Below are positions 61,730-63,675 of a DNA stretch of 64,000 nucleotides, piece by piece. Location: assembly GCF_032191835.1 (NCBI RefSeq), contig NC_083232.1, forward strand, positions 54,622,001-54,686,000. Direction: 5' to 3'. Position 1 is the stretch's first letter; the number at the start of each line of letters is the position of its first letter. The position numbers and the translations under genes are program-made. The stretch comes from Heteronotia binoei (Eukaryota). The notes under the pieces are model-generated. The model was not told where the DNA came from. It saw only the letters and a program-made list of their open reading frames with translations, and ran no database searches.

Positions 61730-63273
61730 GTTGGGAACAGAAACACTTACACCGTTATCCTTTTGGTTGTATAAGTCACACATATGTCAAAACACATAAT
61801 CACAAAGGACATACTTGTCATGCTGATTTGTCACTTCTAACAGGAAGTGTTGATGTCACATTCTGCCATATTTAATGGGTGCGTCTGGTGGTTCCCTGAA
61901 AAGTGGCAGGAGAATGTTGTGCGGCCCTGAGCCGCCTCGGTGGGGAGGGCGGGATATAAATCGAATAAAATGAAAATGAAATGAAATTTCCAGTCAAGAA
62001 GATTATATAAATACATAGGATAATGCATGTACATGGAAATGTTATACAGTATTATGATCATCTTTCTAAGCCCTCAGCAGAGTCAGAGCATTCATATAGA
62101 TATTTATGATGAATTGGGCAATTCCACAGTGTGTCTATAGTACAACAAAATTGTAGTGGTGTTTATTGCTGTTACTTAAATCCAGAGACAAGAGCAAAGA
62201 ACAGACTTGGCAAGTCATTCTACAAATGTGAAAGAAGTCTCAGGTTTGCAGAAAAATCTGACATCAAAGAATACATTGGGGAATTAAAAAAACCCCCAAA
62301 TAGTAGAAGCAGCATCTGTAGCTTTAAGAAATGAATGCCCACAGTGACCATTGTTGGATAAACATAATAATACTGCTGGGCATCAAGCTTTACTGACAGA
62401 AACGAAAAACCCGAGGAGGCAGGGCCCTTTCCATGGCTGTTCTGGCCTTTGAGGGAAGATTCATCAGGGCCAGACCTGTCAGAAATCACTGGGCAACTTA
62501 CTACTACTTGACTTGCATGACTTACCCAAGGCAGGTTGCTTGCTACTCTTCAGTAGCAGTCACCCCACAAAAGCCAGTGTGGGGTCATTAGAATTTTAGC
62601 CTAGAATCAGAAAAACCCAAGTTCAAATTACCACTCTGCCATGGAAGCTTACTGGGTGACCTGGGCCATTTATATATTCTCATCCTAATCTTCTTCATAG
62701 GGTTGTTGTGAGGACAAAATAAAGCAGAGGAGATTGATGCAAGCTGCTTTGGATTCTCACTGTGGTGAAAGATGGGGTATAAATGAAATATAGTTGAAGA
62801 TGGGGGCTACAGAAAATGTGGGTGGGTGGGAAGGATAGAAGGAAGCAGGGAAAAGTAAGCACTTGGGGGTTTTGAGGAGGAGGGAAGCAGGAAATAGTGT
62901 GGGCAATTGGATGTAGAAGAAAAAGAAGTGCTATCTGCAGGTCCCTACGGGTTCACCAGTATGCAACTGTGTGTGGTTTGGTGGCTGGCACTGTGCAATC
63001 GGCATATTTTTCCTGAATAGAAGAGTGCTGAAAGAGGGAAAGAAAGAGGGTGAAGTGGGGGTGGGGGCGCAGCAGATAAAAGTAGGTTGGCTGGTGAGTG
63101 GGAAGGAGAGAAGGAAGCAGGAAAAGGGGACAGGCCATGGGGGCTTTCAGGAAAGGGAAAGAGGAAATACCAAGGGAGGGGGAATGAAATGCCCTGCACA
63201 AGTCCCTATGATCCCCTGCTTGCCTTTCCCAATGCAATGTAATTCTGGTGGGATAGCTGTGTTCGTCTGTTGT

Positions 63274-63659
63274 ACAAGAACAGTGGAAGCACAATATATG
63301 AAATACAAAAATACAAGATATTGTGCACAAACAAACACTCTTAACTGGTGTATATAAAGTTCTATTATAATGAAATGAACAGCCCACAACAGTGGGCATA
63401 CATTCTACCACAAATTATGCAGTCGAGTTTCCCGCATTTGGGGGAAACTTCGCAGGAGGTTTTCCCAGGGTGAGGCTCATCCATTGCACTCCGGGTGTGC
63501 TGACCCCTGCGATTTCCCCAAATGCGGGAAACTCGACTGCATAATTTGTGGTAGAATGTATGCCCACTGTTGTGGGCTGTTCATTTCATTATAATAGAAC
63601 TTTATATACACCAGTTAAGAGTGTTTGTTTGTGCACAATATCTTGTATTTTTGTATTTT
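63274..63659. mobile_element. 386-bp fold-back insertion of a U1-headed chimeric sequence with a 16-bp TSD
   Basis: TGTGTTCGTCTGTTGT at 63258-63273 and 63660-63675. Arms 63301-63443 and 63516-63658 are perfect reverse complements (143 bp) with a 72-bp spacer. Confidence 0.9.
63451..63554 (+). pseudogene. RNU1: U1 snRNA fragment (about nt 33/40-136), lacking the 5' end and stem-loop 4
   Basis: GGTTTTCCCAGGGTGAGGCTCATCCATTGCACTCCGGGTGTGCTGACCCCTGCGATTTCCCCAAATGCGGGAAACTCGACTGCATAATTTGTGGTAG matches vertebrate U1 SL2, SL3 and the Sm site. A shorter inverted copy lies at 63405-63456. Confidence 0.95.
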
Positions 63660-63675
63660 TGTGTTCGTCTGTTGT

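Follow-up and report, generated by a model that had tools for sequence, protein, structure and literature searches.

A U1-derived mirror-image insertion in the genome of the gecko Heteronotia binoei resembles the insertions of Penelope-like elements in its anatomy

The window analysed here, a 64-kb stretch of NC_083232.1 from Heteronotia binoei, contains a 386-nt U1-derived insertion that is laid out as a mirror image and lies between exact 16-nt direct repeats. The insert and its target-site duplication (TSD) are together one real insertion event. We lean towards the view that this single event worked like the retrotransposition of Penelope-like elements (PLEs). The involvement of a PLE is something that we infer solely from the anatomy of the insert, and we do not file the insert itself as a member of a PLE family.

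Exactly two copies of the 16-mer TGTGTTCGTCTGTTGT lie in the window, one at each border of the insert (Table 1), where chance would be expected to yield 0.02 matches even with up to two mismatches allowed. Between these repeats lie two inverted copies of one unit, in which U1 snRNA-like sequence is followed by an AT-rich tail. The inverted-repeat listing of the window pairs 63301-63446 with 63513-63658, and the exact core of these arms is identical at 143 of 143 positions. At the outer ends, 27 unmatched bases separate the left arm from the left repeat, and a single T separates the right arm from the right repeat. At the inner ends, a gapped alignment of the arms shows the left arm tracking the mirror of the right copy for approximately 13 nt beyond the core, with insertions of G, CT and A, and the two arms stop at different U1 positions. 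The insert contains no poly(A). A sequence-only reading of this DNA had reported the 16-bp TSD, the inverted arms with their 143/143 identity, the lack of poly(A), the 27 additional tail bases of the left arm and a central joint made by microhomology with a small indel. All of these were confirmed, the joint in the form of the heptamer TCGCAGG accompanied by small insertions in the arm alignment. Its view that both ends of a single, TSD-bracketed insertion are 3′ ends of the copied RNA is also supported.

Table 1. Positions and strands of the parts of the insertion and of its flanking repeats.
Feature	Coordinates	Strand	Basis
Left copy of the 16-nt TSD	63258-63273	.	Exact direct repeat, two copies in the window
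One-sided 27-nt 'tail' extension: 3′ end of the inverted copy, missing from the forward copy	63274-63300	-	No mirror at the right end
Inverted (left) arm: AT-rich tail (63301 to ~63404) and U1-like 3′ part	63301-63443	-	143/143 complementary to 63516-63658
Central joint: inverted copy runs with small insertions into the 7-nt TCGCAGG, which can be assigned to either copy (microhomology)	63444-63456	.	Gapped arm alignment; sequence
Single-copy middle, 66 nt: U1-like part unique to the forward copy, ~U1 nt 33-86 (numbering of the sequence-only reading)	63447-63512	+	Gap between the arms; within the Rfam U1 match
Forward (right) arm: U1-like 3′ part including the Sm site, SL4-like hairpin (63562-63577) and AT-rich tail to the first start site	63516-63658	+	Inverted repeat; Rfam; folding
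Single extra T at the boundary of forward arm and TSD	63659	+	Unmirrored in the left arm; outside the empty-site sequence
Right copy of the 16-nt TSD	63660-63675	.	Exact direct repeat

The same reading had called the event very recent. Zero differences between the 143-nt arms set an upper age limit of approximately 5-10 My, assuming 1-2e-9 per site per year. The claim stands to that extent, as a bound on the age, and the true age could be greater if the arms have converted each other. Within the 64-kb window the flanks of the insertion are unique, there is no paralogous empty site, and neither the tail nor the flanks have another copy. Just upstream of the insertion, a purine-rich 33-nt motif is present at 62821-62853 and again at 63093-63125 (91% identity, 272 nt apart). 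The wider match around it extends over 78 nt at 78% identity and looks like an old local duplication.

The Rfam U1 model (RF00003) matches the plus strand at 63445-63585 with 84.5 bits (E 1.7e-19), which exceeds the gathering score (69.5). Over approximately model positions 46-137 the alignment is strong, and it is near-perfect at the U1A-binding loop, in stem-loop 3 and at the Sm site. The 5′ third is absent from the alignment or forced into it, and another hairpin, aligned with low posterior probability, takes the place of stem-loop 4. Judged by this alignment, the insert has neither the 5′ splice-site-binding end nor the stem-loop 4 of a complete U1 snRNA gene, and a copy without the U1 5′ end therefore cannot act as U1. 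The junction between U1 and tail is identical in both arms; as both cDNAs carry it, the junction predates the insertion and was already present in the template RNA. Sequence words of the insert were found in public reads in small shares (0.09-0.15) from many organisms, with no run containing the locus, and we read these shares as probably due to conserved U1 words.

After the Sm site, the tail extends for approximately 104 nt in the right copy and 131 nt in the left copy, with a GC content of 31%. No Rfam family matches it. Hammerhead ribozymes were absent from the window at the gathering score, and searches of the tail and of the remaining window with E-value thresholds of up to 1 and 10 also found none. 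There is no PLE ORF in the insert, and no PLE or LINE copy that shares the tail was found in the 64-kb window. A 42-aa translation of the tail had no meaningful relatives among 1.84 billion representatives, its sole match (E 9e-4) being a repetitive, hairpin-derived junk protein, and on this ground we rejected the idea that a PLE ORF starts in the tail. Moreover, the open frame of the tail is uninformative, because two of the three sense frames are open. A comparison by eye with the ORF start and the tail of Poseidon_Ac, which are GC-richer, revealed no likeness to the tail of the insert. Folded alone, the tail is predicted to form the hairpin at 63562-63577 and a 9-bp stem around the first (inner) start site, such that this site sits in the loop of the stem; the 5′ strand of the stem is AC-rich. 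The outer ~15 nt of the 27-nt extension, read in sense, resemble the TSD at 12 of 15 positions, a likeness equalled by approximately 1% of shuffles or random 16-mers. The TSD thereby makes an imperfect inverted repeat with the outer part of the extension (63258-63300).

Several other features were noted in the window. In a retroelement at 976-6007, an ORF of 551 aa with a match to Pfam LAP2alpha (E 8e-21) precedes an ORF that carries RVT_1 and RT_RNaseH, and the element contains an inverted pair (5616-5677 and 5946-6007) that is 97% complementary. We take the LAP2alpha domain to be related to DIRS-type gag, in which case the retroelement may be DIRS-like and not the TMPO gene. An ORF at 30837-31160 (+) matches Pfam FAM221 (E 5.8e-31) and is probably an exon of FAM221A/B. 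Two related short hairpin elements (32324-32475 and 44240-44389), with inverted arms of 42-43 nt and a 66-nt loop, look like MITE copies; both score below gathering against the models mir-5408 and mir-727, on either strand. A tRNA-derived SINE at 58670-58870 (+), which scores 42 bits against Rfam tRNA and has both an A-run and a tail, resembles the squamate Sauria SINE type. Lastly, an Rfam S4-Flavobacteria leader match at 8971-9017 (-) is barely above gathering (35.6 versus 35.2 bits), adjoins runs of N at 7778-7941 and 7996-8215, and is most likely due to chance.

The plus strand reads U1 and tail in sense in the right half of the insert and in antisense in the left half. From this arrangement, the minus strand of the right half, including the single-copy middle, would be a cDNA primed from the bottom-strand nick, whilst the left half would be a cDNA primed from the top-strand nick and started 27 nt further 3′ in the template. 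We propose that staggered nicks 16 bp apart would leave two 3′-OH ends. The top-strand end would prime a cDNA at the outer start site and give rise to the left arm, reaching approximately U1 nt 87. The bottom-strand end would prime a second cDNA at the inner start site, 27 nt upstream, and give rise to the right arm, reaching approximately U1 nt 33. The 3′ ends of the two cDNAs would then pair at TCGCAGG/CCTGCGA, and each would be completed with the other as template. Two target-primed cDNAs joined in this manner account for all parts of the insert, with an enzymology that we infer from its structure. The sequence-only reading had offered two origins, namely priming of reverse transcription by both nicked target strands or the folding back of one cDNA. 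The former is the best-fitting model. The latter is disfavoured because no snap-back copy can exceed its template in length, and a simple snap-back of one cDNA was rejected since the left arm, with its 27 tail bases missing from the right arm, would be longer than its template by that number.

The template would have been a pre-existing RNA that was U1 snRNA-like up to the Sm site and continued into a different hairpin and approximately 100 nt of AT-rich sequence, with no recognisable PLE. Such an RNA could come from a variant or pseudo-U1 locus that is read through, or from a non-autonomous U1-headed element, copied in trans.

Insertions of PLEs have been described as head-to-head inverted, 5′-truncated copies with an extension of approximately 30 nt (30-40 nt) at one end only and no poly(A) (PMC8557442, PMC3846280). 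Arkhipova et al. (2013) report that an inverted pLTR completes the PLE insert and that a TSD flanks it (PMC3846280). The insertion in H. binoei shares with PLE insertions (Evgen'ev & Arkhipova 2005; PMC3846280; PMC8557442; PMC11167929) the overlapping head-to-head arms with an inverted 5′-truncated copy, an extension confined to one end (27 nt here versus the published 30-40 nt), the lack of poly(A), a TSD around the whole unit and the apparent use of two start sites on two target strands. Moreover, Frangieh et al. (2024) found that the protein of an Anolis PLE (PAc) cleaves and extends both strands in vitro (PMC11167929). Reverse transcription of PAc begins from two adjacent internal sites in an AC-rich stem-loop; its 'tail' is the stretch between these start sites, which are not homologous to the target (PMC11167929). 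In parallel to this arrangement, the inner start site here is predicted to lie in a loop, the one closed by the 9-bp stem with its AC-rich 5′ strand. The sequence-only reading, measuring the insertion against L1 twin priming, had considered it an unusual integration product. On this point we differ, as the layout is the published standard anatomy of PLE insertions. By comparison with these, the mirror-image layout is ordinary for the PLE class rather than a new mode of integration, and only the U1 cargo is unusual.

There are also differences from known PLE insertions. Neither a hammerhead nor a PLE ORF is present in the insert, no PLE sequence was detected in it by the Rfam and protein searches or the comparison with Poseidon_Ac, and its cargo is U1 snRNA-like. 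The TSD is 16 bp long, whereas 8-10 bp is quoted for rotifer PLEs. Targets of PLE endonucleases are AT-rich, with 5′-ATT-3′ for PAc, and are microsatellites for some clades. Here, the TG-rich 16-mer (44% GC) would have been nicked between GC and TG and between GT and GG, neither of which is an ATT site; the 5′-ATT-3′ preference is that of PAc and may not be that of gecko PLEs. The Penelope endonuclease is reported to need tail sequence for recognition, as in the account of the system in PMC11167929, and the likeness of the target to the end of the tail would fit such recognition, in a weak and post hoc manner. The Anolis PLE requires the RNA of its own ORF start in vitro (PMC11167929), and because of this the copying of an unrelated RNA in trans is unproven. 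The literature that we searched yielded no link between PLEs and snRNA cargo.

Parallels to the unit itself exist among snRNA-derived retroposons. SINEU, the U1/U2-headed SINEs of crocodilians (Kojima 2015, PMC4494074), likewise join a U1-derived head to an unrelated 3′ part, are retrotransposed and are not expected to have an internal promoter. However, they have a poly(A) end, are linked to the Tx1-Mar LINE, have been found in crocodilians only and occur as single or tandem copies that are not head-to-head (PMC4494074). Membership in SINEU was therefore rejected for an insert that lacks poly(A) and has no second copy in the 64-kb window. The snRNA retropseudogenes and snRNA-L1 template-switch chimeras (Van Arsdell 1981; Buzdin 2002; Garcia-Perez 2007), in the passages of PMC4494074 that summarise them, are also U1-derived, copied from RNA and flanked by a TSD of approximately 16 bp. 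As described in those passages, they differ in being single-armed and 3′-truncated or polyadenylated, or in being followed by L1/Alu. In the insert, by contrast, the U1 part is 5′-truncated, continues into a tail of non-U1 sequence and is present as two mirror-image copies. We consider it rather unlikely that the unit represents an undescribed family of non-autonomous gecko retroposons with a U1-derived head and a PLE-recognised tail, which would be a PLE-driven counterpart of the crocodilian SINEU.

Amongst the alternatives to PLE-type retrotransposition, the one that survives best, and that we still regard as unlikely, is an accident of LINE (non-PLE) machinery. It would resemble twin priming, except that the second target strand would prime at the 3′ terminus of another RNA molecule, or of the same one used again, rather than internally, and the inverted copies would overlap. 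L1 twin priming (Ostertag & Kazazian 2001) reportedly uses an internal site of one RNA and yields an inverted and a direct segment that do not overlap, with poly(A) at just one of the ends. It has in common with the insertion as reconstructed here that both 3′-OH ends of the target prime and that microhomology links the two cDNAs within a single TSD. Furthermore, a 16-bp TSD is typical of AP-endonuclease LINEs, and a tail end that resembles the target is what would be expected if the RNA of a stringent-type LINE paired with the nicked target. In the insert, however, the same 143 nt are present in both arms where classical twin priming gives segments that do not overlap, both outer ends are 3′ ends, and there is neither poly(A) nor a 3′ microsatellite. 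No LINE in the window shares the tail. The LINE explanation also needs one ad hoc step for the one-sided extension of ~30 nt and another for the overlapping head-to-head arms, both of which the PLE mode would explain directly.

Less probable still is an origin of the palindrome at the DNA level. Either palindromic DNA or RNA that already existed at a source locus would have been inserted whole, or a simple insertion would have been palindromised later by fold-back repair or replication template switching. Self-annealing of resected ends is known to make inverted duplications beside retro-insertions in L1 experiments (bioRxiv 10.1101/2024.12.14.628481), and arm-to-arm gene conversion would also keep the arms perfectly identical. 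However, those published fold-backs duplicate flanking genomic DNA and not the insert alone (bioRxiv 10.1101/2024.12.14.628481), whereas the TSD brackets the whole structure exactly, such that a later fold-back would have had to stop precisely at the borders of the insert. A palindrome that was ready-made at its source merely shifts the question elsewhere.

An assembly artefact, in the form of a fold-back chimeric read or a mis-join, is very improbable. Inverted structures of the PLE type are known to trouble assemblies, but fold-back artefacts do not create a 402-bp local insert that is flanked by an exact 16-nt repeat, whose arms end unequally and meet at a joint made by microhomology, and on both sides of which normal unique sequence continues. 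Least credible of all is the reading as a DNA transposon or a MITE bounded by terminal inverted repeats. Whilst long inverted repeats with flanking direct repeats are superficially MITE-like and the window holds a pair of elements that look like MITEs (32324-32475 and 44240-44389), the inverted repeat here is non-terminal on the left, where the 27 unmatched bases intervene, the 16-bp TSD is to our knowledge outside the range of the known cut-and-paste superfamilies, and the arms consist of a U1 pseudogene and a tail with no second copy in 64 kb.

If the PLE reading is true, one young and cleanly bounded insert records a whole PLE integration on a foreign template. The priming of both strands, the start sites 27 nt apart and the microhomology joint would then lend genomic support to the behaviour of the Anolis PLE in vitro. 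The insert would be a hint, too, that RNAs foreign to PLEs, such as the transcript of a U1 variant, can be copied by them, as U6 and other snRNAs are by L1. For annotation, the same reading would carry the warning that perfect, TSD-flanked palindromes in squamate genomes are usually PLE products and not assembly errors, MITEs or exotic L1 events. Moreover, should a U1-headed, PLE-recognised family exist in geckos, PLE machinery would be able to mobilise snRNA-derived RNAs without a hammerhead ribozyme.
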